The notes beneath the pieces were generated by a model. That model did not search any database and was not told the DNA's origin. It saw nothing but the letters and a program-made list of their open reading frames with translations. From contig QPMI01000106.1 of the NCBI GenBank assembly GCA_004431415.1, positions 62,001 to 126,000 on the forward strand: a stretch of DNA of 64,000 nt, read 5' to 3'. The DNA is from Cyanophora paradoxa CCMP329. Taxonomy: Eukaryota; Plantae; Glaucophyta. Below, piece after piece: positions 4,854 through 45,595 of the stretch; position 1 is the first letter of the stretch; each line of letters opens with the position of its first letter. The translations under genes were made by a program, and so were the position numbers.

Positions 4854-7267
4854 ATGGCGGCCGCGGACACAACCGGCAACGTTAACGATGTCGAAGCGGG
4901 CGGAGTGCCCAGACAGTCTCCTCACTGGCGGAAGCTGCGGCTTGCGGTTCGATCCAGCAGCGCATTTGTTGACAGGTTCGTTTCGTACTGCCGCCTGCGT
5001 GCCTGTGTCGCATTGCCGGGCGCTGCTCAACCGGCAGCTCGTACGCGTCCGCAGGAAGTGGGGCCATGGGCTGTTCTCGCAGGGCTTCCAGCACATGTTC
5101 CTTCGCTCTGCGACGATGCGGACGCGCAAGGCCGAGAGCGCCGCCCCTTCGGAGACCACGCCGCTCCTGCCGGCCGCGCCCGCGCAGGCGGGTGCGGCAG
5201 ACGCTAAGGACGAGATGATGCACGGCGACGCGACCGTCTTTCAGTCCATCTCGAACAGCGTGAACATCCTGCTCGGCATCGGTGCGCGCCCCGGGTTCTG
5301 TAGATCAAATCTGCAGCTCACCGCCCCGTCCGCCAGGCGTGCTGGCGCTGCCCTTCTCCCTGCGCATGGCCGGCTGGTCGGGACTGCTCTGGCTCGTCTT
5401 CCTGGGCGTCCTGGTGCGCCCCGCGTCCGGGCGCGGCCGCCAGCGCGCCCCGCCGATGCGGCGCGCCCGCAGATGGCGTACACCGCAAAGCTGATGGGCC
5501 GCTGCATGCTGGAGACACACTGCCTCTCGTACCCCGACCTGGCTGAAGCGGCCATGGGCCACTTCGGCCGCTGGATGGTCTCCGCCATCCTCTACTTCGG
5601 TTCGAATCCTGCCGGCGCCCCTTCCGGAAGCGAGCGAGCCGTACCCCGCAGAGCTCTTCTCGATGCTCGTCATCTTCATCATCATGGAGGGGGAGAACCT
5701 CCACAAGGCCCGCGCAATCACGTATCCCCCTCCCCGCCCGGCCGGGCTGACGTACCCCCCGCCAGATCTTCCCCGAGGTGCCGCTCCTGACATTCATGGT
5801 GGGTACGGCGGTCCTCGTGCTGCCCACGGCCTGGATGCGGGACCTTTCCTGGATCTCTTACATCTCCTCCGTCGGCGTCGTTGCCGCACGTGCGCCATTC
5901 CGTACCCCCCGGTGCACCGGCGTACCCCCGACGCCCGCCCGGCAGTGACGCTCATCGGAGTCGTCCTCACGAAGGCGGCGGTCGTCATTGGCGTCGAGGC
6001 GAGCCCGTACCCCCCCGCGGCTCGGCCCCCCGCGGCGGGCCCCTGAGGCCCCTGCGCAGGGGACCCCCGTGGGCCCCCTCCTCGACCGCACGTCCTTCGT
6101 CTCGGACTGGGCGACGTGCGCCGGCCCCGTACCCCCGGAAGCTCTCGTACCCCAGCCGACCCGCGCCCCGCCCTCCGCAGGGTTCCGATCGCCTTTGGGC
6201 TCATGACCTTCTCCGTCGGCGGTCACGCTGTGGTGAGCCTGAGCCGGCTCGATCGGCAACCCCGCCGGTGGCCGAGCAGCTGATCCGCGCCGTGCCCCCC
6301 CCCTCGGTCAGTTCCCCTCGATCAACGCGTCGATGCGGGAGCCCGAGAAGTTCGACCGGGTGGTCGATATCTCCTACCTCGTCGTCCTCTTGGCGTACCC
6401 CTCCCCACGATCCCCCTTACCCCATTGTCAATCTGACCCGGCTCCCTCTGTCGCAGGTACGGCGCCATGGCGGGGGCGGGGTACGTCCTCTTCGGGCCCA
6501 AAGTCTCGCCCCAGATCACGGTACCCCGGGAGCCTTCATGCACGCCTTCGTGCTCGGCTCTAACAATGTACCCCAGCTGGACCTGACGGGCATATACGGT
6601 ACCCTGGGCACGTGCCTCATCCTCATCGCCCCCCTCACCAAGTTCTCCCTCAACTGCAACCCCGTCGCCGTGCGCCCCGTACCCCCGCCCCGGCCCACCC
6701 GTACCCCCCTCCCCCGACGCGGGCGCTGTATCCCCAGTTCGGCATCGAGGAGTGGTTCGGGATCGGGGACTGCGAGGGGGACCGGGACGGGAGCGTCCCG
6801 GCCTCCAAGCGCGCGGCGCGCCTCGCCGTCCGCACGTCGCTTGTCGTCGCTGCGCTCTTCGTCGCCATCGCGGTACCCGCCTCCCTCTCGCCTCGGCCGC
6901 ACCGTACCCCCCGCCGACCGCGCCCGGGCCGGGCGCAGTGCCCCTCGTTCGGACTCGTCGTCGCTGTGGTCGGCTCCTTCGCATCGATGGCAGTCGCCGC
7001 GTGCGCCGTGTCCCGCCCGCGCGCCCCTTGCCGCCCCTCGCGCCGTCTCACCGGTACCCCTCCAGCATCTTCCCCCCCATGCTGTACCTCGGCATCTTCC
7101 GCGGCCGCCTCCCCGCGTGGGAGGTCGCGCTCAGGTGCCGCCGTACCCCCCCGCGCGCTCGCGGCGCCCCGCGTGGTGACGCGTACCCCCGCAGCGTCTT
7201 CGCGGCGCTCGTGGGCGTCGCGTGCGCCGCGACGGGTACCCTGGCGTCGCTCGCGAACCTGAGCTGA
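4854..7267 (+). CDS. Amino-acid transporter (Aa_trans / AVT1-like, probably vacuolar), copy 1
   Basis: Exons read ATVFQSISNSVNILLGIG|VLALPFSLRMAGWSGLLWLVFLGVL|MAYTAKLMGRCM..SYPDLAEAAMG..FSVGGHAV|FPSINASMREPEKFDRVVD..PLTKFSL..FGLVVAVVGSF. Acidic dileucine motif ETTPLL. Introns are GT/GC-AG. Stop TGA ends at 7267. Confidence 0.9.
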
Positions 7268-7937
7268 CCGTGGACTGCCCACCCGACCCGTTGGTCGTAG
7301 CCTAGTAGTTTATTATTCTCTTTCCCATTCGTTATTTGGCGTGAGCGCTTAAGCTTGCCGCGTTCATGCACCTGTATATTCAACCGCGCTTAATTAGTAG
7401 TTTGCGTGACTTATAGCTAACTGACCCCACCACCGCTGCGCTTTCTGGGCTGAGCGAATGCTCTCCTGCGCTGAGCGAGGGCTGGAATTTGTGGACATGG
7501 CATCAAATTTTGCGCTATAGCTAGCGCTGCGATTCCGGACGCCGACAGCGGCCAATTCACAGTGTCAACCGCGCCAATTGCGTTCATCATATGCATCCTC
7601 ATGATCGATTCGAGACTTCACGTGCTTTGGGGCAAACGCCGGCGCCGGCCGCCGGGCGCGCGCCGGCTGGTGCATGCGGCGGTGCCGCCCGGCGCCGGCG
7701 GCCGGGCCGGCGAAGCTTAAGGCGCCGGCAAGGATGGGGCCTGTCAGTGCCTGTCACAGACTCACAGTGTAGCCGGGCCGCGGGCCGGGCGGCGGACGCG
7801 GCCCTGCGGGGCCGCCGGCGCCGCCGTGCCGGCGACAGCGCTTTCTTCGGACAGGGGGTACGCCTTAATTCGGCAAGCTGACGGCGGCAAGCGAGCCGGC
7901 TGAAAGCCTGCGGGCGGCGGATCGCGGCGGTGCCTGC

Positions 7938-10356
7938 GTGCCGAGCGCTGCAGCTACGATCCGATCCCCCGCCGTCCCCGCATCTCGACTCAGTGGAGTC
8001 CCCGAACCACGGCACACTCGGCGGCAAAGGCGGCACGGCCGCAGGAAATGCGGCAGCGGCCTGTTCTCACACGGCTTCCAGCACATGTTCCTCATCTCTG
8101 CGGATGTACATGTGCGGCGGCGAAAGGCCGAGGCATCGGTCCCTTCGGAGACCACGCCGCTCCTACCGGCCGCGGCCGCGTTCGCCGCAGGAACGGCAGA
8201 TGCGGATATGCGGCCGCGCAAGGCCGAGGGCACGGCCCTCTCGGAGACCGCGCCGCTCCTGCCGGCCGCGTTCGCTGCGGGAGCGGTGGACACGAAGGAC
8301 GAGATGATGCACGGCGACGCGACCGTATTCCAATCCATCTCAAACAGCGTGAACATCCTGCTCGGCATCGGTGCGCGCCCCGTGTTCTGTAGATCAAATC
8401 TGCGGTTCACCGGCCCGTCCGCCAGGCGTGCTGGCGTTGCCCTTCTCCCTGCGCATGGCCGGCTGGTCAGGTCTACTCTGGCTCGTCTTCTTGGGCGTCC
8501 TGGTGCGCCCCGCGTCCGGCGCGGCCGTCAGCGCCCCGCCGATGCGGCGCGCCCGCAGATGGCGTACACGGCGAAACTGATGGGCCGCTGCATGCTGGAG
8601 ACCCGCTTCGTATCGTACCCTGATCTGGCTGAGGCGGCCATGGGCCACTTCGGCCGCTGGATGGTCTCCGCCATCCTCTACTTCGGTTCGAATCCCGCCG
8701 GCGCCCCTTTCGGCAGCGAGCGAGCCGTACCCCGCAGAGCTCTTCTCGATGCTCGTCATCTTCATCATCATGGAGGGGGAGAACCTCCACAAGGCCCGCG
8801 CAATCACGTATCCCCCTCCCCGCCGGCCGGGCTGACGTACCCCCCGCCAGATCTTCCCCGAGGTGCCACTCCTGACATTCATGGTGGGTACGGCGGTCCT
8901 CGTGCTGCCCACGGCCTGGATGCGGGACCTTTCCTGGATCTCTTACATCTCCTCCGTCGGCGTCGTTTCCGCACGTGCGCCATTCCGTACCCCCCCTGCA
9001 CCGGCGTACCCCCGACGCCCGCCCGGCAGTGACGCTCATCGGAGTCGTCCTCACGAAGGCGGCGGTCGTCATTGGCGTCGAGGCGAGCCCGTACCCCCCC
9101 GCGGCTCGGCCCCCCACGGCGGGCCCCTGAGGCCCCTGCGCAGGGGACCCCCGTGGGCCCCCTCCTCGACCGCACGTCCTTCGTCTCGGACTGGGCGACG
9201 TGCGCCGGCCCCGTACCCCCCGGAAGCTCTCGTACCCCCAGCCGACCCGCGCCCCGCCCTCCGCAGGGTTCCGATCGCCTTTGGGCTCATGACCTTCTCC
9301 GTCGGCGGTCACGCTGTGGTGAGCCTGAGCCGGCTCGATCGGCAACCCCGCCGGTGGCCGAGCAGCTGATCCGCGCCGTGCCCCCCCCCTCGGTCAGTTC
9401 CCGTCGATCAACGCGTCGATGCGGGAGCCCGAGAAGTTCGACCGGGTGGTCGATATCTCCTACCTCGTCGTCCTCCTCGCGTACCCCTCCCCCGATCCCA
9501 CCCTCCACCCTCTTTTCCAATCTGACCTGGCGCCCTCGGTCGCAGGTACGGTGCTGTGGCGGGGGCGGGGTACATCCTCTTCGGGCCCAACGTCTCCCCC
9601 CAGATCACGGTACCCCAGGAGCCTTCATGCGCGCCTTCGTGCTCGGCTCTAACAATGTACCCCAGCTGGACCTGACGGGTATATACGGTACCCTGGGCAC
9701 CTGCCTCATCCTCATCGCCCCCCTCACCAAGTTCTCCCTCAACTGCAACCCCGTCGCCGTGCGCCCCGTACCCCCGCCCCGGCCCACCCGTACCCCCCTC
9801 CCCCGACGCGGGCGCTGTACCCCCAGTTCGGCATCGAGGAGTGGTTCGGGATCGGGGACTGCGAGGGGGACCGGGACGGGAGCGTCCCGGCCTCCAAGCG
9901 CGCGGCGCGCCTCGCCGTCCGCACGTCGCTTGTCGTCGCTGCGCTCTTCGTCGCCATCGCGGTACCCACCTCCCTCTCGCCTCGGCCGCACCGTACCCCC
10001 CGCCGACCGCGCCCGGGCCGGGCGCAGTGCCCCTCGTTCGGACTCGTCGTCGCTGTGGTCGGCTCCTTCGCATCGATGGCAGTCGCCGCGTGCGCCGTGT
10101 CCCGCCCGCGCGCCCCTTGCCGCCCCTGGCGCCGTCTCACCGGTACCCCTCCAGCATCTTCCCCCCCATGCTGTACCTCGGCATCTTCCGCGGCCGCCTC
10201 CCCGCGTGGGAGGTCGCGCTCAGGTGCCGCCGTACCCCCCCGCGCGCTCGCGGCGCCCCGCGCGGTGACGCGTACCCCCGCAGCGTCTTCGCGGCGCTCG
10301 TGGGCGTCGCGTGCGCCGCGACGGGTACCCTGGCGTCGCTCGCGAACCTGAGCTGA
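7938..10356 (+). CDS. Amino-acid transporter, tandem copy 2 (start uncertain)
   Basis: Exons and introns are nearly identical to copy 1 from about 8036 onward. The 5' end differs and contains a duplicated RKAE..SET(T/A)PLLPAA segment. Confidence 0.85.
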
Positions 10357-10916: not shown

Positions 10917-12029
10917 CCATCCTCCCAGGGTGCTTGTGCCCATTCCCGATAGCTTGCATGTACAGACACCGTGTGTGACCCCAGTTCCAAATTAAAATTC
11001 TCATATATATATATCTTGTTTTGTCTCTCCAAATTAAAGTTCCAGCTGTACGTATCTTGTCTCGGTGTGTGCGATCGCGAGTTCCTCCCCCCCCGGGCCC
11101 GATCTGCGGCAGCTTCTAGGCTCTGCAATCCGACTCGAGCTCGTTTCGAGCTCAAGCATTTGGAGGAAGACATCAATTACAAGCGCATGCGCAGCGCTAG
11201 CAGATCTAGATCTGTAGCTAGAAGCGCAGAGAGGTAACAGTACTCAGTTGCTAGCTAGTAGCTACAGCTGTAGTAATCAAGTGGCAATTGCAAGCACGTG
11301 CACATCATGGCATGCCATATGCATGGCCATGTAAAAAAAACAGCTTGTGAAAAACACAAGGGCATAAGCGAAAAAACAGCTTGTGCAAATCTGAGACAGA
11401 CAGACCGTCGGATCGGACTGCTGTTACACTCGGAGCCTCGGAGACAGATTTGCGGCAGCGGAAAGTACAGATGTAGTGTGATCAAAGAGCTATCCGATGA
11501 TCACTATAGCTAGTTATGATGATGATATACATCATATTATAAGCTGACGTTTACAAGTGAAACTGATAGAAAAGGAAGAAGCTGAAGAGAACTTGACTGA
11601 TCGAAAGGCTCTTCGAATTCACTGAGTCATCGACATCAAATTACTAAAAGCTTCATGAAAGCGTTAACTGCCAGACAGAAATAGATCTAGAAATACATCT
11701 GAAAGCCTCAAACGGTAGAAAAGTGCATGCGTATAGAGAAAGACAGTCGACAAGCTTAAGTACAATCGCAAGGACAGCGCTATCCGCAATTGCAAGGAAA
11801 GATAAGAATCATTGAATGCTGAAAGCTTCAAAAGACTCATGATCAGGCCCTGAGGGCGAGATATACGTGGAAGACGAAAATAGCCTAAACGAAGCTAGAC
11901 GAAGACTAAGAGAAGGTGAAAGAATGAGACATAGATCTAGCTAGAGAATGTTTCAGCATGATTACATGCATATGTACATGTTACAGAATCGACATGCTTT
12001 TCGTCGATCGACACTCACGATCGCTAGCG

Positions 12030-13731
12030 CTATTTGTGAAGATCTAGAGTCGGAGGAGCGGCGCCGGCTTCGGGCATAGGCTTGAAGGTTTTAAAGGAAG
12101 CTTCGGAGTTCGGTGCTGAGACTGACAGCTGCTGCGGCTCAGGCGCCGGCGCCATCGATATCTGGCAATCTGAGGATATCGATCCGGACGGGCTGTCGCG
12201 TGCATTACTGGCCATGGCCATGGGCGCCTCTTCCTCGTCCTCGAATCGGGTCTCCATGGCCAGCGTCTTCTTAAGATCTTCGAGTTTCTTCAATTCGCCG
12301 TCAATGAAACTGTTGATTGCCCCCAAAATGCGCTCGAAAGCACTATTAACATTAACGTCAGCCGGCGCCTGCTGCAATCATCAGCACTGCAGTTGGCGTC
12401 GTGATTCCTGCACCGAAGTCCATTCACCTTCCCATCGCGATCGGCGTTCGCGATCGAGGTTCGAGCGAAGAAGGAGAGAAGTCGAGCGAAGATTCCAGAG
12501 CGGCTGCGATTGTTGGTAAAACTCGACACCTGTGGAGACGAGTTAATATTCGAAAGAGAACTGAAGTGTCATCAGGGTTAATGTCTCAAATCGAACCAGG
12601 TTGGCCGGAAATTCTTTGTAGAAGGTAAGGACAGCTTCCTGCGCACACTCAGGATCAGTTAACTTCGCGTGGATTGCAATTATTCGAGTAGGCTTTTAGA
12701 TAGAAGTTGACATTAATATTGAACGCACTGCATATTTGAGAAAATTGTAAACGGCCTGTTCTTGAGTGCTGGTTAGCTCAGGATCACGTGCGCCACTTCC
12801 AGCCCCATGGTCGTGGCCAGCTGCGTCCTTTGGAAGCTGGAGGGTTTTCCGTACAGCTTTCGCCTGCGTGCCAAGCCTGTCAAACTTTCTCCGATATATA
12901 TATACATACATACATATGAATATTCTGAAGCTCGACACTCACCTCTCGTACGAGTCCGGTCAGAGGAGCCTGCCGCAATGTATTTTTCAGCAGCGAAAAC
13001 GACCGAAATTAAGCAAGCAGCGCACAAGCGCGTTGGCGGCCAGTTCTGGCAGCTTTTTTAAATCCGCACTGCCGTCCGCGAGCTTCTCAAGCTCATCGTT
13101 GATTATTCCGGAAATGCTGTTGACGATGGTTTCAATGTCCTGTGCAAGGGTACGCGGGAATCAGCATCGAACGCCGCAAAGCTTTTCTTGTCGCACTTGA
13201 AGTGACGGAGTACTCGTGTCGGCATCCAATAGCACAATTGTAGATTGACCACGATCATGAGCTATGGGACCCGTCGCGGAGCTCCCAAGAAGTTGATTGA
13301 ACAATGTCTTGCACTTGGCCAGTTTCGGGGGAGTCGGTTCTGGAGCCACCTTACGCGTTCGAGCACTGTTTTCGGAGAGTTGTTTTTGAGCCTCGCGACC
13401 GAAGCTGATTCTCAATTCTTTCTGCGGTGCGCATATGCAAACGAAAGTCAGTTGTTGCAAGCTTCGGGCGCCATGCACCGATACGTATACCGCTCACCAG
13501 TGTGCGCAGCAGATCATCGAAACCCTTCGTTTTCTTTTTCTGAATGCGCAAACGCGTCAATCGTTTGGATACGCGATAACGTACGCGTCGAAAGAGCACC
13601 AGTTCACTAAGCTTCTTCAAAGTGCCCGCTAAAGCCAAGAGAATAACACCGCGCTTCCAAAATGCCGCGAAGACTCCGACGACCACGACTGGACCACCGG
13701 CGCCAGCGGCGGGCACAACCTGGGCGTGCAT
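12030..13731 (-). pseudogene. Decayed multi-exon gene of lower GC, function unknown (helical segments)
   Basis: Protein-like pieces (AFERILGAINSFIDGELKKLEDLKK; ISGIINDELEKLADG; KKLSELVLFRRVRY) are interrupted by stops and palindromic insertions. Confidence 0.4.
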
Positions 13732-13985
13732 CGATCATCTTAAAGATCTAGATGTTATGCGGGCTTTATATATATCTTACGCACCGTCTTTACCACCTCC
13801 GACTTCGAGTCTGCCCCGGCGACCGCCGCACCTGAGAGATTATAATTACTGGTCAGTTGCCAAGTTGCAAGACTCGAGCTCAGAATTCGAATATTAATGC
13901 TTATGGCGTGGGTTTCTTATCCAGTTTACTTGTGAGCAGGCCGACGAGAGCGTCAGTCGCATCTGCCAAATCCTCATGATCAGGT

Positions 13986-16730
13986 TTAATTTTGAGGATA
14001 TCGAGAGCATGCATATGGGGTCAGAATTCGAAGATCGCCGCGCACTGCCTGTGTTTGCGATTGCCGTGGCGCTGCTCGAGGACGTCGACGCCGACGTGGA
14101 CGTCGACTGGGACTGAGAGGCCGACTGCGACGTCGACTGCGCCTCCGCCGTGACGGTCTGCGTGACCTGCGTCTGCGTCTGGCTCGCCGACGTGCTAGAG
14201 CTAGTGCTGCCCGAGGTGGAGGCGCTGCCCGAAGCCGAGGTGCTGCCGGAGCTAGACGACGACGTGACTGACGATTGCACGTTGCCGATCGAAATGACAA
14301 TCTGGAGGGGGCAGGGGACGAGGATGCGGTCTCAGTGCCATATGCATGCGCCCGCGCCTTCTAGATCTTGCAATTGGCGAGCCGTTTTTGTAGCGCGCAT
14401 ACCTGCGGGGCGCTCGTCGATGCTGTTGTGAATCAGGAGGTCAGCAGATCGAATGAGGTCGACACATAGACGCGAGGCGAACTCTGATTGTTTGAAGGCG
14501 TAGACACCAGGGGCACCGGCGCCGGCGTCGGCGTCGGCGTTGGGTCGAGGGGCGTGGTGAAGCTGAGGTCTTGAATGGAAACCGAGGTACCCTGCCGCGC
14601 GGCCGGGCGCCTGGATCAGACGCTAGGTTGCACCCAAGCACAATGGGAACAAATTCAAGCACGGCAATGTTCGCAATGCTCGCATTGCAGCGGTAGGTGG
14701 AGGTCGGGAGTAGACCTGTGATTCCTAGAGTAATGAATCTCGAGCCCGCAGCCAAATCGGCCGCCGTTGCTGTCAACGTTTTACTCCAAACCGTGGCACC
14801 ACCGCTTATATTTACTGGTGCGCAAGTTCCGGAAGCTGACTGAATGTCGACGATCGCGCCGCTGGGTGTTGTTATAGCGTTCGGAAAACTGACACTGAGC
14901 ATTGCTGAGCGCGAAGTGATGTCCTTGATTGTGGCGCCGGTCGGGCTGCTCGGGGGACACGGAGACATGCTGACGCCAACGCTTCCAGCCGGAATCGAGC
15001 CGTGTCTGTCATATCCGGAGTAATCTTTAACAACCTGAGCGGCCGCAGAGTAAGGTTCAGGGCTCAGCAAGACTTTTTATTATAATGAAATATATACAAG
15101 TCTAATACTAATTATATGATGTCAGCGCCCCTTTTCGCACCTTGGACAAGCAACCGTCGAACTTGAAGAAGAATATAGGCTTGAATGTGGCAAACGAGCT
15201 GCCTGCAATATCGTTCGAAGCCAAAGTCCAGACTTCGGGATCATTGACCCCCCGAGCCCACAGTCTGAAGTTCGCTAGATGAAATCCACCCCTCACGAGG
15301 CCGTTTCCCGCGATTTTACACTGAGCAGACCAGACAGTCGTAACCTGCGCATACATATTCATTGATGCAGTGCGCGAATGAGGAGCCTTTGTCGTGTATG
15401 CATGGGCACCAGGACGGCGGCGGTTGAATCGAACCGGTTGGCGTAATTCGCCCCTGCGAAAAAAGCACCCGTGGTCAATAAAAGAAACACAAAGATGTAC
15501 AAGGCCGTAAGCGTTTTAGGCGCATCGCGATCGCCTTTTATGCGCACCATAGCCATTCATGTAGCCTCGAATGCCGGTTCTGAAGTAAGTCCTCGGGCCG
15601 ACATTCGTGACTGTGACGGTCAGGTCCGGGGTTCCGGGATAGCTCCCCGTATTGAAAACCACCACGATGTGATTCCTGCGCCAACGACGTTATCATGAAT
15701 CTCGTGTGCATGTTCAAATTCTGCCTTCAATTCAAGTGCGTGCGCATATGCATACGCACCACTGATACCACTGAAGAAAAGAAGACGCCGACCGATTATA
15801 TATATGATCAGCCGAAGTCGTGGAAAGAGAAATGCAATAGATGATCTCACTGGGATTCCACTAGAGCCAGGGAACAGAAGCACTTGTTGTATGAGGTTGC
15901 CGTTCCAGTAGTACCTACGTGTTTGGGGCTTTCAATCAGTGCACATGTTTCTGGCGCAGCATCGAGTTGAAAGATGATTACATCCACAACAAAGCAGTCT
16001 TCCCGTTCACATTCGTTTCGCCCTGCAAACAAAAGGAAATGAGTCAGCGGAACGCAAAAGGAAAAAAGAAGAAACAAAACAAACTCGCGTTTCTGCAGAG
16101 CGCTTCGGACATCGGGCAAAACACCAAGTTCCACTGGTAGGAGCCTCCGCCTGTACTTGCAGAAGAGTCATAGCACGAATAGATGATCTCGTGCATCGCT
16201 TGCTCATTGTCCTGTGCTTGCGTGAGTTATGAATCCGGGATCCCTGTCACAGTGTGCTCGATTATGAGCGCGCGGGTTCTTTGTATAGGCACCAGTTTGA
16301 TCCTGCGCACGCTCCACACATCAGGCCTATCATGATCAAGAGCGTGTGGACAGGAGGAGATCTAGATCTAGAGCCTCGAGGGGGATCCGGAGGAATGCTA
16401 GCGCTAGCTATAGCGACCAAAAAACCCACCAGAAGTCGAGAGTTCTGGGCGACTCGTGGCTGTTCATCGATACAGTCCCTCCAATCGCTGCGACCGTGAT
16501 CAGTTGCACTCGGAGTCCGATCCATTGGTGAGCGTGGGGGCCATAATACTCGAGTACGCACTAACGGCGAGACTGCTTGGGGGACCGGGAGACAAATAGT
16601 TCAAGCTGAACGGTGTCGGGTTGGACGGGAATGCGAAAGCCGATGCCGCGCAGAGGAGAAGCAGCGGTATGAATGTGGCGAGACGCGGCTGCGAACCCCG
16701 CTGTCCCGGGAGTCCACGTGCGCGCATTCG
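13986..16730 (-). pseudogene. Probably decayed secreted/surface protein: signal peptide, Cys-rich exons, FN3-like domain and S/T-rich tail
   Basis: Signal-like ATFIPLLLLCAASAFA. FN3-like ..ITSRSAMLSVSFP..ITGLLPTSTYRCNASI. Mucin-like SSSGSTSASGSAST..TQTQVTQTVT. Several in-frame stops between the pieces. Confidence 0.45.
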
Positions 16731-17363
16731 CGATCTGTCGCGGATATTAAACTTCCGCCCGGCGGTCTCGGGAGATTTTGGTCCACCGTGGCACGTGCGC
16801 GCACTCGCAATCGGCCGCAATCGGTTCCGCCGCGGCCCGCGCGTGCACGTGCAGATCCAAAGACATCACGTGAGAGGGGTGATGCTGGAGCATGCGATGA
16901 TCTGCTGGATGATGATGCTGGTGCTGGGCCCCCGGGGCGGTTTCGGCTGAAGGTGCAGCTGCAGGCTGCTTGCGCTGCTGCCCGCGGCTCAGCGGCTGCT
17001 GCTTTCCCTTCTTGTGCCCGGCCGCGCGCGCGCGATCGATGGCAGGCGATGCGCGCACTCTCAAATTGGACTCCGGGAGTCTTGCTAATTAATGCCGAGT
17101 CACAGTCACTGAGTGCGACTCAGTGCCGACTCGGCGATTACTAAAGTTAGTACTATAGCTAGTACGTACTGCCACGGTACTGGTATACTCCGAGGCTCAC
17201 TGCCGAGCCCCGCGATCGGATCCGGAGCTCGAGGCTGTAAGCCTGTAACCGCTGTACTGCGGTATAGCTTACTAAGTTATTAACTCACTACCGTAGTACT
17301 ATTAGTCTACTAATAGTAAGTTACTAAGTTAGGAAAGGTTCCGGCCCGCGGCCCTGACTCTCA

Positions 17364-18084
17364 GGCTGTTTTCCGGTTGCAGGTCAAGTCTTACATATCA
17401 ATGGCGAAATGGAGGACTTGCCGGGCCGAGTTCGGTACTTTCCGCGAACCGGTGGTACTTTTCGCCAACCGACAGTCCGGTAGACTTAAGTCTTTGGCGC
17501 GGTTTTCCCAAAATCGCGCCAAAGCTTAAGCTTAAGACTTAAGTCTACCGGACTGTCGGTTGGGACTGTTGGTTCGTGTTATCGAGCTTCATAGCTAGCT
17601 AGAGGGGTACCGGTAGGCATACAGACTACAGCGCTAGCGCTATAGCTAGCACTAGCCATATGCATAGTGCACTGCCGCCTAGTCCCTAGGCCCTATAGCT
17701 ACGTATACTAGCTATAGCTAGTCCTAGTCCTAGGCCCTAGCTAGCTATGTAGCGCTAGCTGTATGCCGCATAATGCCGGCAGCTGGGCCGGCGCGGCCCC
17801 CGGCGGCGCCCTATGCTATGATAGCTCACTGAGTCAGCGGCTAGCGCTAGCGGCTAGCGCTAGCACCGCGGTACCCCCCCGGGCGCCAGGTTAGTCTTCA
17901 TGATCAGGCAAACACTAGTACTGCGGCTGCAGTGCGGCAAACGGGCCCCGGGCTGTTCCGGTTGAGCCTCCTAGGCAAGACTTCAACGGCGTCCTAGGAC
18001 CCGAACAAATAGCCACCACCGGCGAAGCGACAGCCCCGGTAAAGTCCAAGTCCGCCGCCTGTGTTCAGCATCCGGAAAACAGCC
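17364..18084. mobile_element. Non-autonomous TIR element, PIF/Harbinger (Tourist)-like
   Basis: TIRs GGCTGTTTTCCGGTTGC and GCATCCGGAAAACAGCC match at 16/17. Left flank is TCA; the right flank resolves to TCA once a CTC-GAG-CTC triplication is removed. Confidence 0.6.
17465..17563. repeat. Fold-back inverted repeat with ~42-bp arms and a CCC loop, nested in the element above
   Basis: CCAACCGACAGTCCGGTAGACTTAAGTCTTTGGCGCG.. pairs with ..CGCGCCAAAG[CTTAAGCTTAAG]ACTTAAGTCTACCGGACTGTCGGTTGG. Confidence 0.85.
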
Positions 18085-18494
18085 TCGAGCTCAGAGTCTG
18101 ATACTATGATAATGAGTCCGACGGTCTGATGACTCAGTGACTTTGATCATGGGACTCGATGATGAGAGTCGCGGGCAACTTGCAATTGCGGCCCACTGGG
18201 CCAACGCGTTAACTAGTAACTTCAAAAAAGTTGCGGGAACTTGCCAAGTCGCGCATGCGCATGCGGGCCGATGATGCGGCCCGCCGCCGCCGGGCCGGCC
18301 GCCGCCGGCCCGCCGGCGCCGGGCGCCTGGCCGCCGCCGGCGCCGGCCCGGCGGTGGCCATGGCCGGCCACCGGCGGCCAGGCGCGCCGCGGCCCGCGGG
18401 CCGTAGGCCCTTAGTACATCACTGTGCACGTGCACGTACCTACTAGGCTACGCGTCCACTCCCGGAGTCCGCGAGCTCGTCGTGCTGCTGTGAG

Positions 18495-19212
18495 TAGGGG
18501 GGTGGACCGAGTCGGGGGGTCGACCGTCGGACCCGATATCGATCGACCCGACCCGCTCGCCGGGCCGACCCGCCCGGGTCGACCCGGGTCGGCCCAAGGG
18601 GGGTACTTCTATCCCGTCCTCTACCAAACTTTTGAAAGGAATATCGATATCGCAAACGTCATGAACTGCATCGAAATCGTGCTACGTATACGTATATACA
18701 ATGAAGTAGAGACAGTTTATAAATGCAATATCTGCAATATCTGATGCATTTTGCACTCCGGAAACGACCTTCTGCTGTTCCTGGGGGGTACGTATATATC
18801 TACCATATATGCGCGCATCATGATCATGATCAAGCAGCCATGCCACGTCCGGATCCACTACGTATACATGTACGTATACGTATATATATACATGTGTGCA
18901 TTTGCATGCATCTGTGCCGCAGTGCAGTGCAACATAGACATGTAGAGCACATATAATACGTCTAATCTAGATCTAGACGAAGATTTCAGCATTTAGCAAC
19001 ACCTGAGAAAGGTGCAGATCTAGATCTAGAACGGTTCCCGGCCCAAGGGTGTACCCAGGACCCTGCGGCCCGGGTCGACCCGGTTCGGCCCCGGATCGGC
19101 CCGACCGATCTGACCCGGGTCGGCCGCGGGGGGTCGGCCCGACCGACCCGCTTGCCTGGCCGACCTGACCGCCAGTGACCGGGTCGACCCGGGTCGGCCC
19201 GGCCCGGTCCAC
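18495..19212. mobile_element. hAT-like non-autonomous element with CCGACC/GGTCGG subterminal arrays
   Basis: Left end TAGGGGGGTGGACCG; right end CGGTCCAC is degenerate. Dense GACCCG/CGGGTC repeats at 18510-18597 and 19070-19205. Confidence 0.45.
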
Positions 19213-19299
19213 GAATTGGACCATGATATCGATGCTAGAGCCTGTGAGCCAAGAATCGACTCGGCGAGAATGTACATATCATATGCATGTACAGTGATG

Positions 19300-19550
19300 T
19301 ACTATTGTAGAACTAGTTAATTTAGTACAGGAAAATAATTAGTACTTTGCCAAAACTGCTAATTTAGCAGCTGCCAGGCTGGTAAAAGTTTAGTCGATCA
19401 GTCTTCGCGGCCGCGGGGCTTTTGTATGGCAGAGGCGGGGCTACCCCTAAGAATTCTCGGCTTTAGCAGGCGGGAAATATTAAGTAGATCGCCCAAAAAT
19501 GTTTAGTACTATAAATATGCAGCCCACTAAATATTTCTCGCTCTCCAGTA
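19300..19550. mobile_element. Diverged relative of the TA-flanked MITE family found at 21.5 and 46.4 kb
   Basis: Shares GCCAAAACT, TATGGC..GCTACCCC and a CAGTA end with the other two copies. Confidence 0.3.
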
Positions 19551-19855
19551 CGTATACTCAGTAAAACTGTACATCACAGTACATGTAGTATACTGCGAGT
19601 ATGCGACCTCGACTTAGTTTTGTGGCCGTTAAAATTGCGGCGCCGCGGCCGGCGCCGCGGCGGCAATTCAACCAAAGAAAAATGCATGAAGCTTCGAAAG
19701 GCTTAAGCTTTCGGCCCCTTGAGTACCAGTCGTGCGTTTGCAATATGGAACGTTGAACGTCGAACATGATTACCAATCAGATTTAACCGCGAATTGCGAA
19801 AAATTCAATCTTAACATCAATCAAGTGAAATGAAGTTTGTTTTTGATATGAATCA

Positions 19856-21400
19856 TACTTGCCTGTTGGGCGGGGGCAAAGACGACGCGCGGGGTTCCGT
19901 CGATCTCGAGCCGGTAGCGCGAGAGCGCAAAGAGGAGGAACGAGCGCGACGGGTAGCACGGGACGATCGATCCGCCCGCGCTCTCGTCGACGACGCTCGC
20001 GCCGATCGACGCGGGGTCCAGCTCTGCGCCGGTGGCGACGTCGTGAAAGGAGAGCACCGAGACGCTCGCCCCCGCCGAGCAGACGCGCGCCTCGCGCTCG
20101 GCGTCGAGCGGGATCCACTCGAGCGCGAGGGCGCGATCCTGCCTCGACGCGCACGATGAGAGCGTACCGCCATATTCCCATCGGTTCGCGACGGGGCACC
20201 CGCGCCCGTTGGCCTTGTACGCGGTCTCGGTCAATTCCGGGAGGGCACCGCACCCGGGCGTGACGCGCGCGTAGATCGTCGACGGGACCGACGCGCCCCA
20301 GTTAGCGGCGATTCGGTAGCCGGAGTAGGCGCAGTAACCGACGTTCTGGACGGGGGCGACGGCCGAGAACGGGTACGTGTACCCGTACCTGTTCACGGAG
20401 TAGACGCTCCAGGCGGGGTCCGCCGCGGAGATCGACGCCCGGTCGATCAGGCAGGAGTAGCCCTGCGAGACGGACCCCGGGTGGTCGCATACGTACACGC
20501 TCGCGCCGTTGGTGACGACCGTGCGCACCACGCTGGATTCGTAGGACTCGTCGACCTCGTCCATGACGCCCGGGCGGATCCGGGCGCGCTCGCAAAACGC
20601 GGCGCCGAGGCCCGCGTGGCGCCGGGGCTTGCGCGGGCCGTCGAGCTCGTAGAGGGCGAGATCGTACGGGTGCTCGGTGCGGCTCGGCTCTGCGACCAGG
20701 AGCCGCTCGCCGTCCATGTCCGCGAGGAGCGAGCCGTGATGACGCGGGATCGTGTGCGTCGTCTTCGGGCCCGTCGCGCACCGGTACCGGTCCACGACAA
20801 AGTTGCGCTCCAGCTCCCCGTCCTCGGGGGCCGGGCGGAAGAGCCCGTAGCGAAACTCGCGCAGGACGAGCACCCCGCCCTCGCAGGCGGCGAGGCGCGC
20901 GTAGTCGTCGCGCGGGATCGGGAGGGTGCGCCGGTCCCAGCGCCCGTCGGCCGCGCGGACGAGGGAGACGATCGACTTGCCGTACTTGGACGCAAACGCG
21001 ACGCTCCGCCCGTCGTCCGCGACGCTCACGGGGACGCCCGGCGATGTGAGCTCCGAGGCGACGAGCTCGCCCCCGCAAAAGACGGCCACCGACCCCGGGA
21101 AGAAGTCGCTGCCGCCGTCGTCCGTGGCGATCACGACGATCCGCGCCCCGGCGCCGCCGCGCGAGGCGTAGGCGGCCCCGACCTTGGAGCTGCACCGCGC
21201 CTTGGCGAGGGGCGCGGCGTCCGCGGTCGCGCCCGCGGAAAAGGCGGCGACGACGTGCGTCGTCCCGTCGTACTCGACGCTCCAGTCCTGGTCCTCGGGG
21301 CGCCGGGCCCGGATCCGGTACTCGTGGTCCCCGGCCTCGAGGAACGTTCGCCACGTTGCCACAAGTTGTTGCAAGTTGTTGGGGTAGAGCTCGAGAGCAA
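19856..21400 (-). CDS. Long uninterrupted exon/ORF of about 500 aa, unknown beta-rich (propeller-like?) protein
   Basis: ORF 19821-21473 has complex, protein-like composition and GC3-biased codons. A probable GC donor (CAG|GCAAGT) lies near 19863. Confidence 0.6.
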
Positions 21401-21473
21401 CCACTGTTCTAGAGACTCGAGAGTCGAGACTCGAGCTCGAGTCACTCGGTTTTTTGTTTATGTTTCGACCCAA

Positions 21474-21687
21474 CGTCTAATCTGCCGTGGAGTTAATTTG
21501 CCGAATTCGCCCAAAACTGGAATTGCCGTGGCGATAAATTGCCAAATCCGGATCTCTGCTCTATGGCGGCCTAGGAAAACCGCTACCCCCAAGCAATTGC
21601 CGTGGTGCTAAATTGCCGAATATTAATTCGGCCTCTCGGCAATTTACGGCAATTATTTACCACGGCTAAAAAACTACGCCTACAGTA
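21474..21687. mobile_element. MITE, sibling of 46390-46614, lacking its left terminus
   Basis: AATTGCCG subterminal repeats, shared core GCTCTATGGC..CTACCCCCA and CGGCAATTTACGGCAATT. Ends CCTACAG|TA. Confidence 0.65.
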
Positions 21688-22219
21688 TTTGGAATCCCCC
21701 AGCGCTTGCAAAATTGACGGCAAGCCGCAGGCCTACCGGTACCCCCGGGCCCCAGCCCCGGCCCCCAGGGCCCAGCCTGCCGCCCAGGGGCCAGGGCGGC
21801 AGCCTGGCAGGGCCCCAGCCGCGCGCGGGCCCATGGCCAGCGCTGCTAGCGCTGGCAGTCTCAGAGTCTGTGTACTACGGTACGTGGCAGGCTCTGGCAG
21901 CGCATGCGCTGACTCAGTGTCACTGTGTCAGAGCCTGAGTCAGTGTCACTGAGTCACTCAGTGATGATGCGCATGCGCGGTACGCCGTGACGGTAACCCT
22001 ACTCTACTACGGTTAGGGTTGCCGAAATTCGGAAATTCGGAACTTCGGAAGTCTACGGTAGCCTGTCGGTAGGATGGCTTTTTAACCCTCGCCGCGGCCG
22101 GCTACCGACGCCTACCGTACTACGGTATTATCGTCGGTATACCGTGGTATACGCGTAGTCGTCGCGTACGTAGGCCCGGCGTAGCCGCGTAGGGCACTAA
22201 ATCATGAATTACTGCGGCG

Positions 22220-22460
22220 GAAATTAACGCGGTGTCAAACCTGGTTGAGCAAAAATTAACGCGGTGTAAAAGTTCGAGGCTTGCATGCACATGTATGGGG
22301 CGGTGATGGTGGGGGGTACTGTATGCAGCAACCTGCAGCTGGCAGTACTAGTAAAGACCGTCGGACTCTAGATCTGCTGAGAATTAACGCGGTACCAAAT
22401 TAACGCGTTGAGATTGGATTTCGGCGGGTTGATTTGGTACCGCGTTAACGTTAGTTAATT
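22220..22460. repeat. Cluster of AATTAACGCG(G)T motifs (4 direct, 1 inverted), probably a TE remnant
   Basis: Copies near 22222, 22254, 22382 and 22398, with inverted ACCGCGTTAA near 22439. Confidence 0.5.
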
Positions 22461-22478
22461 TAAGTGCCCGCGGCGCTG

Positions 22479-23574
22479 GGCCGGCTCGATCGGCAACCCC
22501 GCCGGTGGCCGAGCAGCTGATCCGCGCCGTACCCCCCCCCCCCCTCGGTCAGTTCCCCTCGATCAACGCGTCGATGCGGGAGCCCGAGAAGTTCGACCGG
22601 GTGGTCGATATCTCCTACCTCGTCGTCCTCTTGGCGTACCCCTCCCCCGATCCCACCCTCCACCCTCTTTTCCAATCTGACCTAGGCCTGGCGCCCTCCG
22701 GATCCGTCGCAGGTACGGTGCTGTGGCGGGGGCGGGGTATATCCTGTTCGGGCCCATGGCCAACGTCTCCCCCAGATCACGGTACCCCAGGAGCCTTCAT
22801 GCACGCCTTCGTAATCGGCCGCGGCTCTAACAATGTACCCCAGCTGGACCTGACGGGCATATACGGTACCCTGGGCACATGCCTCATCCTCATCGCCCCC
22901 CTCACCAAGTTCTCCCTCAACTGCAACCCCGTCGCCGTGCGCCCCGTACCCCCGCCCCGCACCCGTACCCCCCTCCCCCGACGCGGGCGCTGTACGTATA
23001 CCCCCCAGTTCGGCATCGAGGAGTGGTTCGGGATCGGGGAATGCGAAGGGGACCGGGACGGGAGCGTCCCGGCCTCCAAGCGCGCGGCGCGCCTCGCCGT
23101 CCGCACGTCGCTTGTCGTCGCTGCGCTCTTCGTCGCCATCGCGGTACCCACCTCCCTCTCGCCTCGGCCGCACCGTACCCCCCGCCGACCGCGCCCGGGC
23201 CGGGCGCAGTGCCCCTCGTTCGGACTCGTCGTCGCTGTGGTCGGCTCCTTCGCATCGATGGCAGTCGCCGCGTGCGCCGTGTCCCGCCCGCGCGCCCCTT
23301 GCCGCCCCTCGCGCCGTCTCACCGGTACCCCTCCAGCATCTCCCCCCCCATGCTGTACCTCGGCATCTTCCGCGGCCGCCTCCCCGCGTGGGAGCTCGAG
23401 GTCGCGCTCATGATCAGGTGCCTTCTCCCCCCCCTCGGCGCGCCCCCGGCGCCCCGCGCGGTGACGCCTACCCCCGCAGCGTCTTCGAATTCGCGCGCGG
23501 CGCTCGTGGGCGTTGCGTGCGCCGCGATGGGTACCCTGCAGCTGGCGTCGCTCGCGAATTCGAACCTGAGCTGA
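22479..23574 (+). pseudogene. 5'-truncated third copy of the amino-acid transporter, introns retained
   Basis: Aligns with 6243-7267 and 9329-10356, and flank homology to copy 1 extends to about 24020. Lacks the 5' half and carries many 6-bp palindromic insertions. Confidence 0.9.
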
Positions 23575-24325
23575 TCGTCGACCGTCCACCCGATCGCGAC
23601 CTGTCCGGGATCCGTCGGCCTGTACATGTGTTATAATTATTCTCTTAAGCTTTCGCAGTCGTTATTTGGCGTGAGCCGCGTTCATGCACCTGTATATTCA
23701 ACCGTGCTTATTTGTTTGTGTGGCCTATATAGCTAGCTGACGTCGACCCGTCACTGCGCTTTCTGGGCTGAGAGAGAGCCCTCGAGCTCCCGGGAGTCCT
23801 GCGCTGAGCGAACTTCGGTAGGCCCATATGCATGGCCATGCAAATGGCATTAAATTCTGCGCTAGCGCTAGCGCTGCATTCGCAGCTAGCGGCCAATTCA
23901 GGTTCATCAAATTCTAGATCTGCGCGCGCGGTTCCGGACAGCGGCCAATTGCAATTCACAGTGTCGACGTCAACCGCGCCGGTTGCGTGCATATACATGC
24001 GTGTCAATTCACGTGCGCATGCGTGCTCTTTCTACCGGCGGTGGCGCGGCCAGTTTGCAAGCCGCTGAGCCTTTAATTTGAAGCTTGTGCGGCTTCTTGT
24101 ACGTATACCCCTGCCGAGGCCAGCTTGCGCCAGCTCCGATCCGAGCTCGATGCTACGCACGCCGAGCCACATGCTGATTGCACTGCGGTAGTGTTGGACC
24201 CTGGCAGCTGTAGTGCACCCTGGCTGCGGAGCTTTTTGGCGCGGCCTGCAGGCTGGTGCATCGGTACATTCGATCTTCCTGCAGCCGGCTGCTGTGCAGC
24301 TGTCAGATCCATATCCCGCGGGGCG

Positions 24326-40865: not shown

Positions 40866-41938
40866 ACGTCCGACGCCGGACCGACGGTCGGCCGCCGGCG
40901 GGCGCCCGGCCCGCGGGCCGCGGGCCCGCGGCCCGCGGGCGCGGCCTCGGGCGGGAGTCGGGCCGCCGAGTCGGCGGCGTCGGGCGCCTCGCGATCGGCC
41001 CCCATTACGGTCCTCGAGCTCCTCCGAGGCTCAAAGTTTTTTCAGACGAAAAACTATTTTGCGCGATTGGGACCACCAATTGCAATCAAATGCCTGCAGG
41101 CTGCAGCCAGTGATGTTATTACTAATTAATCCCAAAAATGCACTATTACCGATAATGTTTAATGGTATTATAATAAACCTTACTAATATTATACTATATT
41201 ACCTGTAATACCTCATAGAAACCCCATTCCCGCAGCCCTGCGCTGCTTATTCTTGATGCTAATATGTCCGAAACACTCTCTTATCACGTGAAACATGCAA
41301 GATGTGACTTTAAGCTTATTGCTAACATGGTTTAAGAGGCCTTTTGAGGCGCACTACAGGGGTACCCCATCAAGCAAGGTCGAACGGGGCTGTTAAAGCC
41401 TTGAAGAGCTTCCTGGTCATCAGAACTGTCAAATTTAGCTTATATGTTGTTAAATAACGTGTAGGTACGTCGTAGAGCGCTGCTGCTCGTGAGATAAGGG
41501 GGTCTTTCCAACCTGTAATACACCTTACCGGTAACCCCGGAAAGTGGCACTATTACAATAATATTATTATAATGCATTATTATAATGTATATTACAGAAT
41601 ATTACTGGTAAGGTTAACATCACTGGCTGCAGCCTGGCAGCCTGCACAGTCTGCACTGGCCCTGCAGGCCATGCACCCGCGGGCCGCGGGCCGCGGCCCG
41701 CCAGTCCGGCGCCGGCGGCTCCGGCCGGCGGCCGAGAGGGCCCGCGACTCGGGCCGCGAGTCCGCGAGTCCGCGACGACTCGGCGACCCGCCAGGCCGGC
41801 CGGCGGCCGCCGGCCGGCGCCCGGCGGCCGCCAGGCCGTCGCCTGCCAGTACTACCGTAAAACACTTTAAGTGCAGCTGGGCGGCCTGGCCCGCCTGCAG
41901 GCTGCAGCTGGACCGTCGTCGATCTGTCCGTCGGACGT
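40866..41938. mobile_element. GC-rich TIR element hosting a nested hAT MITE
   Basis: Terminal inverted repeat ACGTCCGACG / CGTCGGACGT, plus inverted GACGGTC/GACCGTC and GAGTCGG/CGACTC subterminal motifs. Confidence 0.5.
41108..41625. mobile_element. hAT-superfamily MITE (518 bp)
   Basis: Perfect 11-bp TIR CAGTGATGTTA/TAACATCACTG. 8-bp TSD GCTGCAGC at 41100-41107 and 41626-41633. TATTAC subterminal repeats and an AT-rich interior. Confidence 0.85.
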
Positions 41939-43343
41939 AGCGTATAGCTAAGTCTACTGGCCCAGTACTGGGTACCGCCCGGCCGGCGCCTGGCTCGCTG
42001 GAATACCGTAGTACTAGTAGTCTATAGTACTAGTCTACCCGCCTGAAAATTAAATTAGTAGTCTAATTATTGAATATATATAGTGTCTTTCCTTTTTTAT
42101 TGTCGATTTTGGCTCTTTGTCTTATCTTTCTTCGTGCTCTTGTCTTAGTTATTTTGCTTTTTTGTCTTTATGCCCCCTGGGCAGCCCCCGCAGTGCTGGT
42201 GTCTAGAGACTGTGGCCGGTAATTCACCAAAAAAAAAATATATATAGTGGAGCCCGAATTTGTTATAACGATCGAATTAGCTATTTTGGGCCGGGGACGT
42301 CGACTCCATGGCCAGTACTTCGATTCCCTGCTAGCGCTGTGATTTCCTGCGAAGTGGCCTCGAGCTCGTGCGTACAGCTATAGTAACCGTAACCCACATA
42401 TGCATGTACATAATTACCGCCCCAAGCGCCGGCCTAAAAAGTCCGGGCTCCGGAGGGCCAATTTTTACAATCCTCTAATTTCCGATCCAGTGCACGGTAA
42501 TGGGTACACTCGGTAGCACTGGGTTACGTTACTTACGTACTACGGTACTACGGTACCGCCGTACCGGCCGCCGGCCGGCGGCGCCGGCGCGGCTACTACC
42601 GTAGTACGCCGGCTCAGCGGCTTGTCCGAATTCGAAGGCTCCGTAGCTCCGAATTACAGTATAGCTAGGCCCGGCTACGACGCTAGCTATAGCCCGGCCT
42701 AGCCGTGCCTACTAGTAGCCTGGACATGTGCTGCGATGATGTGCAGTGTGAGCTCGAGCCTGCAGCTGCAGCCTGCATGCCGCGCGCAGTGCGCAGGCTC
42801 TGCCAGGCTCAGATGATCAGCCGCCACTGTGGCACATCGTCATCAGTCAGTGAGTGATCGTCGCCGATCGCGAGTCGCTTCAGACGCCTTGCGTATACCG
42901 TAAGCGAGCCTCAATAGGTGCGCATGCGCTTCAAACGCGTACGCTCCGGGCTCCTTAACTTCGCACTGCGGTAAATTAAACATGGTCCGACGGTCTTCGC
43001 ATGCGCTAAATATATAGTGAAACGCTTCAAGCTCGAGCTTGGTCCATTGCCGCAGTGCCAAGTTGCGCCTTCAAAGTACTAGTTAACCATGCATACGCAT
43101 GCGATCGTTACATATATTATTAGCTATAATTGGCCTTGCATATGTGAAGATGTAGACGTCGACCTTGCAGCTGGCTATCTACGACGAGCTACAGGGCTAG
43201 GCTCTATATATGCATGCGCACTGCACATATCCGCAGGCATATGCTCTGTACCAGTTTTGAATCCGGTGCTCTAGTGCTCTGTGCTTACCGTGAGAGGCTT
43301 TGGCTGCAGTTCGGGATTCGTTCACTGAGTCAAGACGTTTCAA

Positions 43344-45595
43344 ATGAGCACCTCTACAACTACGTACACATTCGAGTGCTATGATGGAAATTCCAGCAAT
43401 GGCACGGCTTTTTACAACGGGACTGGGACGCTCCTTGGGACAGTAACGCCAAATACGAGCCAGCAGCCTCAGTTCGCGGCCCAAGAGTGCGTTAACGTTC
43501 GGCGAATAGACGCGAGTTCAAATCGATGCGCATGCGCATGTGCATGTGAGTATTTGGCTGACAATGGGTCGCGTCTTTTGTGCAGCGAATGCTGGGGAAT
43601 GGGAGGTAAATGGCGTCGAAATTTGAGACGATTTCGAACACGCGGCATCTAGAACCGCGTGTTCTGATCGTGGGCCGCGACGTCCGCAGGCGAGGTGCTG
43701 AAGCAGACGTCCAAGTCTGTTTACTCTACAGGTGCTACCAGCACAGGGGTCAGCTGGCTGAACAAGCCGATCGTCACCTGCTTCGACTACTATGGGTTCG
43801 CAATCGGATGCTAACGTTGACTGTACTCTAGATCTCGATTCAGCAACGCATATCATAGTATGCTGACATTTCCATGGTCAGATGTGGCTCAGAGGTCTGG
43901 AACGGCAAGACCGCTGTGCAGCTCGGCACGTCGGTCGACACCATGACGTTCGCACACTCGAGCTCGAGCTCGAGAGATGCTCATTTCAAACAAATTATCA
44001 GATTGATATTGCTGCGCGCCGCATGCGCAGAAAGTGCACCCAGGATTCGGAAGGCTACTCCATGCTGGTCCAGCAGTGGAACACTCAGACGAATGCGTTC
44101 CACACGACTCCGTATTGCCAGAGCCTTTTCAATAAGGTGCGGTTTTGTATAATCTTTAATTGAGCGAGAATTTTTATAAAATCTGATCGAGCGTCTAAAA
44201 AACTTATACGTAATATACGATGTAATGCTGCTATTTCGCAGGGCCCATGCTACAGTGATTACCGCGCTGGCGGAACGAACTTGGGCGTCATCGGGACTTC
44301 CGCTGCGTGCGCCGTTAATTTCGAGCTAGAGACATGATTACGTATACATAAATTACTCCGAACAATTCTGATCATACGCATGCATATGTGTTTGAGCGTG
44401 TACGTGCTCTCGATCGAGCTCACGATCGGTCCACTCAATTATAATAGAGCCCATGGCCATGCACGATCATCTCGAATGCTGATCATGTTCTGAGGGTAAC
44501 CGCATGCGCAGGGACTGCTGGGCAAAGGGGGGCAAGTCTATCGTCTATCAAAACAGAAATTCGACGTCGACAACGAAGACTACCATCGAGAATGTTGTGA
44601 ACAAGAGCGATAACTTGTGCTTTGCTGATTTCAACGGCACGGTGCGAAATGCAATTCTCGGATTTACCGAAATGACGAGCGTTTCGAGTTTGGTTTCTAT
44701 CGCAGGGTGCCTCTCTCGGAGCTTTCGAGAGCCCTCAGTGCGTCAAAATATTGATAGATTTGTTTCCATGACGTGCAGATTCGAATTCATTTCGTCCTCC
44801 GCAGAGCTTGCACTGCAAGCAAAGTTGCGAAGTCGACCACAGCCGTGATTGGGGCCGAGGGGTGCTCGTACAAGCTGAATGTCGACGGGAGCATTGTTAA
44901 CAACTCGTACGAGTGTGGCACTTGCTACACGGACTCCACGTGCGCGCCGCGGCGAACGACTATATCTGATATACGTGCAGAGAGAGATCGTCTCTCATTT
45001 AATTTCGTGTTCGGTCGCGGCAGGTGTGCGACCGCAATGAGCGGCACATATCACCGCTCGTGCGCACACGTGCTTTAATTTCTGCGCGGCTCAAGAGGAG
45101 TCGAACGAACCCTTGTTTCGTTCGCATTATTGCGCAGGGCATGCTTTGGGCTCAGCACTGCAAAGGCGTTCAAGAATGCCGCAGCGGGCGCAACTTGCAC
45201 TCTGAAACCAGCGGCGCGTCTGGACAACGAGGATCAGTCCGCCAGTGAAAAACTCGAAGCTGATCTCGAGGTGCGTGAAGCTTTCTGAAACGGCCTTCAA
45301 TCAGCTGGAATACATAGCGTAAAGCTTTCTGAAACAAGCTTTCTGATCTCGAGAATGCCGGCCGCAGCTGGACTATGACGTGGAGCTGGCCATGGATGCC
45401 TTCGAGGCGGACTTCTCCACAGATGCCGGGCTGGCTGCCGTGCGCGCGCTCCGGCCCCTCTGGCCAAAAGATAGCGCTTCTCTTTTAAACTCCTTCATTT
45501 CAACACAACGTTCACTCGCGGCCTCCGTATGTTCACAAATTCGCATACATTCGCAGGTGGAGGTTGGGCATGCTGACTTCAACGGCGCGGAATGA
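43344..45595 (+). CDS. Cys/Thr/Asn-rich, probably extracellular protein, multi-exon (5' end uncertain)
   Basis: Exons TYTFECYDGNSSNGTAFYNGTG, ECWGMGGK, KCTQDSEGYSMLVQQW, DCWAKGGKSIVY, GCSYKLNVDG..YECGTCYTDST and acidic tail ..VEVGHADFNGAE*. Many N-x-S/T sequons. Confidence 0.55.

Follow-up and report, generated by a model that had tools for sequence, protein, structure and literature searches.

Abundant palindromic three-base scars in a Cyanophora paradoxa contig as probable excision footprints of transposons with a 3-bp target duplication

The window, that is the whole stretch of 64,000 nucleotides analysed here (Cyanophora paradoxa CCMP329, assembly GCA_004431415.1, contig QPMI01000106.1, positions 62,001 to 126,000 of the forward strand), carries three related copies of an amino-acid transporter gene, A, B and C (Table 1), whose exons were mapped from the database spliced model P0002. 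A transporter exon matches the EukProt EP00741 protein tig00000430 g600, and an intronless open reading frame of the window matches g601; relatives of one transporter exon were searched for in metagenomes and none was found. The database model g600 (4854-10356) joins copies A and B as one protein of 958 amino acids, which is probably an annotation error, copy A having its own stop at 7265-7267, and several of the transporter introns between 5056 and 10356 seem to begin with GC. The intronless g601 (19821-21473, minus strand) is an orphan gene of 544 amino acids located between two MITE-like repeats, and the homologue search returned g601 itself as the sole match. A multi-copy repeat with inverted ends of the GGGCACT type (22192-22469) abuts the 5' break of copy C and may be the cause of the truncation of this copy.

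Table 1. Transporter copies and scars in the window (X, three-base target; +4, +5 and +6, number of added bases).
Feature	Position	Strand	Description
Copy A	5056..7267	+	Intact gene for an amino-acid transporter (Pfam Aa_trans); span includes 14 short introns; 0 copy-specific scars
Copy B	8046..10356	+	Intact transporter gene; closest reference for copy C
Densest mixed stretch	16250..19830		41 six-base and 24 eight-base (X-C-X'-G-X) scars in 3.6 kb
+6 scar, X = AAT	21619..21627		Inside high-copy repeat; 6-7 contigs of other copies without these 6 bases
Copy C	22476..23574	+	Pseudogene: 5' half missing, frameshift near 3' end; 10 scars (4 intron, 6 exon)
Three exact +6 scars	22681..22762		X = CCT, TCC, CCA
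Two +6 scars with neighbouring changes	22816..23001		X = CGG at 22816, TAC at 22993
Five exon scars	23392..23564		X = GAG, TCA, TTC, CTG, GAA
+4 product, GCG target	23493..23499		Source of the frameshift; single case
Copy C 3' flank	23575..24125		12 six-base scars in 550 bp, the six of the initial annotation among them
+5 product, TTT target	24072..24079		C and G flanking; identical in contigs of four runs

The initial annotation had noticed, in copy C and its 3' flank, sixteen nine-mers of the form X-X'-X (three bases, their reverse complement X' and the same three bases again) and had read them as six-base insertions relative to the intact paralogues. All sixteen are present at the positions given, and alignment to copies A and B bears out this reading. 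When copy C (22480-23590) was aligned pairwise with copy B to score insertions, seven were exact +6 insertions of the X-X'-X form (22681, 22697, 22754, 23392, 23408, 23536 and 23556) and three came with a neighbouring change: two substitutions immediately upstream of the insertion at 22816, one additional C within a C run at 22993 and, at 23484, where the +6 itself is exact, a separate +4 at GCG (23493-23499), for which dinucleotide slippage may be another origin. Among the flank sites, comparison with copy A gives exact insertions at 23644, 23946 and 23963, and those at 23591 and 23739 (against copy A) and 23631 (against copy B) are +6 by eye. Preservation of the reading frame, also claimed, holds for five of the six exon sites and fails at 23484-23499, where the +10 causes a frameshift, and the peptide given as an example, WEVALR, has S and not R after WEVAL in the database model. 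The scar at 21619 is polarised independently, because other copies of the repeat in which it lies do not have the six bases.

Pairwise alignment of copies A and B gave 72 substitutions over 2159 sites and no X-X'-X insertion; between copies C and B there are 27 substitutions and 10 insertions of this form. On its own branch, copy C has 16 substitutions alongside its 10 scars, or about 0.6 scars per substitution. The introns of A and B, 62 bp in length, have 0 scars per 23 substitutions versus 4 per 9 for those of copy C (Fisher p=0.012). The absence of scars in the A/B introns fits a harmful inserted intermediate, and constraint on the introns explains the contrast too, since they diverge by 2.7% and the exons by 3.7%.

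The initial annotation had named absence from raw reads as a sign of artefact; short-read contigs of as many as four public runs (one of 2012, one of 2019 and two of 2024) contain 15 of the 16 sites, so that these are not assembly artefacts. This support comes from contigs rather than from raw reads, some of the contigs being mosaics of copies B and C. The region 23365-24200 is covered by contigs of four runs with no difference to the assembly, including the +5 site at 24072; no scar polymorphism was found there between the four runs, which may be of one strain. Run X2 covers 22618-22802 without difference, run X1 crosses 22993 gap-free, and site 22816 is spanned by none of the listed contigs. 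Sampled 31-mers of 22400-24100, 70% of which are absent from copies A and B, were present at 80-90% in 14 runs.

Over the 64-kb window, X-X'-X with a 3-nt X has 500 matches when 47 ± 7 are expected from dinucleotide shuffles, and 301 matches versus 15 expected when two-letter words are left out. X of 4 to 6 nt gives few matches and X of 7-8 nt none; the sharp peak predicted for a 3-nt X is thus found within the window. When spacers were allowed (X-s-X'-t-X), a sister class, X-C-X'-G-X, appeared, with 69 matches in the window versus 1.1 expected; it is the only spacer pair standing out and had been missed by the earlier account, which was right about the X-X'-X class. Spacers therefore measure 0 bases (6-bp class) or 1 base (8-bp class). 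Separate 2-, 4- or 5-bp classes are not proposed, their small excesses being derivable from decayed 3-bp scars. Scar density is 0-2 per kb in intact genes versus 5-22 per kb elsewhere, older scars are decayed and nested, and removal of the scars shortens the 25 kb of non-coding DNA by 7.8%; for this DNA, the proposal of a major mutation class is upheld by these figures and by the rate in copy C. Alternating-unit arrays of 4, 5 and 6 units number 17, 9 and 2 in the non-coding DNA versus 9.3, 2.8 and 0.1 for random re-hits, an excess that may come from re-insertion at scars or from 6-mer slippage. No nucleosome-like spacing was found among scars. Two low-GC, spliced-looking regions (11500-16250, minus strand, and 43200-45600, plus strand) have 5-7 scars per kb, like dead DNA, and gave no convincing Pfam match; a spliced protein-kinase-like gene at 1550-3600 (minus strand), Wee1/Myt1-like by eye only, is scar-free.

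The junctions of the scars are palindromic and loop-free, the inserted bases being the reverse complement of the adjacent flank, and both copies of a fixed-length 3-bp target duplication are kept. In the 8-bp class, the spacer bases C and G have a source other than the target and correspond to the ends of an element of the C...G type. Among mixed products, in which one spacer is present, neither C nor G is in excess (8/37 and 9/36), and therefore both ends are cut alike within any event; a single enzyme picking the nick position independently at each end was rejected, since mixed products would then be the commonest class. As for the targets, the initial annotation had seen no sequence preference, and X itself is indeed roughly unbiased, but the flanks favour C at -1 and G at +1. 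These bases occupy 44% of the half-sites of the 6-bp class versus a background of 27.5% (p about 1e-11) and 34% of those of the 8-bp class (p 0.05; difference from the 6-bp class, p 0.04). In the 6-bp class, C..G sites number 36 versus 35 expected from the margins, the two sides being independent, and flanking G..C, A..T and T..A pairs are depleted around scars; such a symmetric preference looks like recognition by a protein dimer, not base pairing. Because mixed products are rare and flank preferences differ between the classes, two enzymes are likely. Among the targets, TAA/TTA are under-represented, and GTA/TAC are in excess among the 8-bp scars (10 versus 1.8 in non-coding DNA), part of which may be footprints of TA-targeting elements.

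Judging from the sequence, we consider it probable, with good confidence, that the scars are excision footprints of CACTA-like cut-and-paste transposons with a 3-bp target-site duplication (TSD), probably involving two enzymes. An element would insert at X to give X-element-X, C-X-G sites being favoured in the 6-bp class. On excision, the transposase would seal each flank as a hairpin, as suggested by the spacer-free palindromic junctions and by the chemistry of hAT, MULE, Transib and RAG; a nick at the border would produce a perfect hairpin and a nick one base inside would keep the terminal C of the element at the tip. A host nuclease would then open each hairpin 2 nt past the tip, a position suggested by the +5 result described below, to leave 4-nt overhangs, 3' and 5' overhangs being indistinguishable from their products. 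Since both flanks carry X, the central base of X would in every case be the point where the overhang ends pair; with fill-in and ligation, the border nick would lead to X-X'-X and the nick one base inside to X-C-X'-G-X, as reproduced in silico. Longer pairing within X would shrink the product to +5 at homotrimers and to +4 at GCG/CGC, which has statistical support. The 99.9-Mb assembly of the C. paradoxa genome, 60.3% covered by genes, is described as probably haploid (PMC6704402), and in a haploid, breaks would more readily be end-joined than repaired from a homologue, leading scars to accumulate wherever selection permits.

Hairpin opening followed by end joining was enumerated in silico for various opening positions. 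With a 3-bp TSD, openings of 2+2, 3+2 or 3+3 nt past the tips all yield X-X'-X, since in every case the ends pair at the middle of X, and this convergence on one product would explain why the scars are uniform; with an 8-bp TSD the openings do not converge. A +5 at homotrimers, which results from longer pairing, is predicted only if the opening is at most 2 nt at both ends, and this prediction was fixed for AAA/TTT ahead of counting. AAA/TTT targets in the 25 kb of non-coding DNA have the +5 word at 12 sites, all of this one window and unpolarised, versus a background of 0.7-1.7 (4 for the best other word with this composition), and have no +6 word. Simulation under a fixed rule gave 9.3 ± 3.2 +6 words at these targets (minimum 3 in 60 runs), and the 2+2 rule gave 8.7 ± 3.3 +5 words. 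The frequency of +6 per 1000 triplets is 16.6 for ordinary triplets, 5.3 for C/G homotrimers and 4.0 for GCG/CGC, for which the end-joining model predicts the +4 size that is seen, polarised, at GCG in copy C. The product thus depends on the microhomology between the opened ends, as the +5 at AAA/TTT and the loss of +6 at GCG/CGC indicate. At two-base-run targets the form shorter by one base is about 1/8 as common as +6; a 2+1 opening, which would make +5 the rule there, was rejected, as was a mismatch-tolerant second +5 product at the same targets (7 versus 5-7). ATA/TAT targets are uninformative owing to TA repeats. Of the hairpin mechanism first proposed, the hairpins at a pair of ends, each with a 3-bp duplication, are supported, but not their opening 3 nt from the tip, which predicts +6 at AAA/TTT: judged by the products, the hairpins appear to be opened 2 nt, not 3, past the tip. 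This position agrees with the preferred cut of Artemis, 2 nt past the hairpin tip. Artemis nicks hairpins to a 3' overhang (PMC4914130).

Flank hairpins are documented for Muta1, hAT, Transib and RAG (PMC5499845). In hAT elements (Ac/Ds), hairpins formed on the flanks are opened by the host and leave short palindromes at the joint (PMC5873905), but their TSD is of 8 bp, the palindrome is centred on the complement of the element-adjacent base and the footprints are many, 28 types in 128 clones (PMC5873905), whereas the C. paradoxa scars have a 3-bp TSD, a centre at the border or at a retained C and one dominant product per class. A hAT origin was rejected, X of 7-8 nt having no matches and the hAT register with a 3-bp TSD giving +4 for every target. 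RAG and Transib also form perfect flank hairpins, which are nicked to an overhang and joined (PMC5499845, PMC4914130); unlike the scars, V(D)J joints are made diverse, and the TSD of Transib is usually of 5 bp, although 3-bp cases with G-starting ends have been reported (bioRxiv 10.64898/2026.08.26.747230). PIF/Harbinger elements such as mPing share the 3-bp TSD but target TAA/TTA and excise precisely through TSD microhomology (PMC4561436); they were rejected, since the scars occur at every triplet, TAA/TTA being under-represented among X, and retain an inverted copy. CACTA/En-Spm (CMC) elements, with their 3-bp TSD, C-starting ends and excision footprints (PMC3193017), are the best candidates, but no element or transposase of this type was found in the window. 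The 3-bp target duplication is implied by the scars alone, and of the inverted-repeat ends 5'-CACT(A/G)...(T/C)AGTG-3' the scars show no more than the outermost C and G, and this in the 8-bp class; elements with such ends do not exceed chance in the window. The 6-bp class is tied to an element by analogy, because its scars carry no foreign base. We found no published report of hairpin chemistry or of an X-X'-X footprint for a CACTA transposase.

Searches of the window for terminal inverted repeats, before and after in-silico removal of the scars, gave no element with a 3-bp TSD and C...G ends but only pairs at chance level, such as an 8-bp CACAG pair (15259-42214) that is within the about 2 expected by chance, and 29 ORF pieces of the window, repeat-like regions included, gave no Pfam match to a transposase, whether Transposase_21 (TnpD/Tnp2) or another. 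No site filled in one copy and scarred in another was found among the paralogues or the contigs of four runs. A repeat motif searched for in metagenome and viral contigs was absent from them. If excision far outpaces the decay of a 9-bp scar, missing elements would be weak evidence against transposons. Two short, high-copy repeat families (19306-19550 and 21483-21687; relative at 46392-46612), whose summed contig depth exceeds 100 times single copy, are TA-flanked with CTG...CAG ends and are MITE-like, not 3-bp-TSD elements. A scar-rich, TA-flanked element with a 12-bp terminal inverted repeat lies at 18414-19302, and an element with a 20-bp terminal inverted repeat at 41099-41634, apparently with TGCA on both sides after removal of an 8-bp scar at its right end and without a Pfam match inside. 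A 17-bp unit is repeated 14 times with 96% identity at 51211-51448, apparently within an intron, and a dispersed unit occurs at about 50815.

No donor element was found among the roughly 300 scars of the window, and their products are unusually uniform, which could also suggest a transposase-like nuclease, host-encoded or domesticated, that produces the 3-bp duplication as well as both hairpins without any lasting mobile element, by abortive insertion or by the invariable removal of a programmed insert. Beyond the hairpin stage, the chemistry would not differ from that proposed for transposons, and the hairpin and end-joining evidence fits equally well; such a nuclease would be a standing mutator pathway of Cyanophora, writing across dispensable DNA. 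We nevertheless regard it as improbable, since the C and G spacers of the 8-bp scars require ends of inserted DNA and since resident elements should be rare anyway if scars last until mutated and elements until excised. Still less probable is a template switch for exactly three bases followed by return, which would write X' and the second X in one step, as for the small inverted triplications of FEN1 (rad27) mutants. These share the direct-inverted-direct order, require no element, and could account for arrays of 5-6 units being at least 3 times as frequent as random re-hits. However, the published triplications are rare, about 50 times longer and variable (median 148/160/148 bp, with 30-bp spacers and 6-bp junction homology; PMC13334657), whereas here the length is fixed and spacers are of 0 or 1 base, and no base pairing primes a switch, because flanking G..C, A..T and T..A pairs are depleted. 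The +5 that replaces +6 at AAA/TTT argues for end joining, and with the fixed C/G spacers, which template switching does not explain either, it contradicts the earlier placing of fixed-length switching as an equal alternative. Finally, an assembly or polishing artefact, or low-complexity chance, has a negligible probability although the assembly is long-read based, as scars are found in short-read contigs of 2012, 2019 and 2024, the +5 site at 24072 included, which refutes it for the sites checked, and as scars avoid intact genes, the older ones are decayed and nested, and the shorter form at two-base-run targets is a minor one.

The chemistry of hairpin footprints is already known; it is the uniformity and the scale that are unusual here. 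As the initial annotation had supposed, no description of such footprints as a bulk mutation class was found in a full-text literature search covering mostly open-access articles, with the classic En/Spm footprint papers outside it; the text of the genome paper has no match for 'palindrom' or 'insertion' (PMC6704402). If scars are indeed left by excised transposons, such footprints would constitute a main mutation class here rather than rare leftovers, amounting to about 0.6 per substitution in the pseudogene and to about 8% of the non-coding bases of the window. Extrapolated from this one window with a gene coverage of 60% (PMC6704402), the genome would contain a few hundred thousand scars, each recording one past insertion and excision, and together they would map transposition, with dates and at single-base resolution, in the absence of the elements themselves. 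They would also be in vivo evidence that elements with a 3-bp TSD form hairpins on their flanks, and would let the position at which a glaucophyte opens hairpins be read from sequence. The end-joining geometry, by which scars are uniform with a 3-bp duplication and not with an 8-bp one, predicts similar signatures in other haploid genomes. For the C. paradoxa genome itself, scars create palindromic 6-mers and in-frame insertions of two residues, and they will distort alignments and estimates of repeat age.
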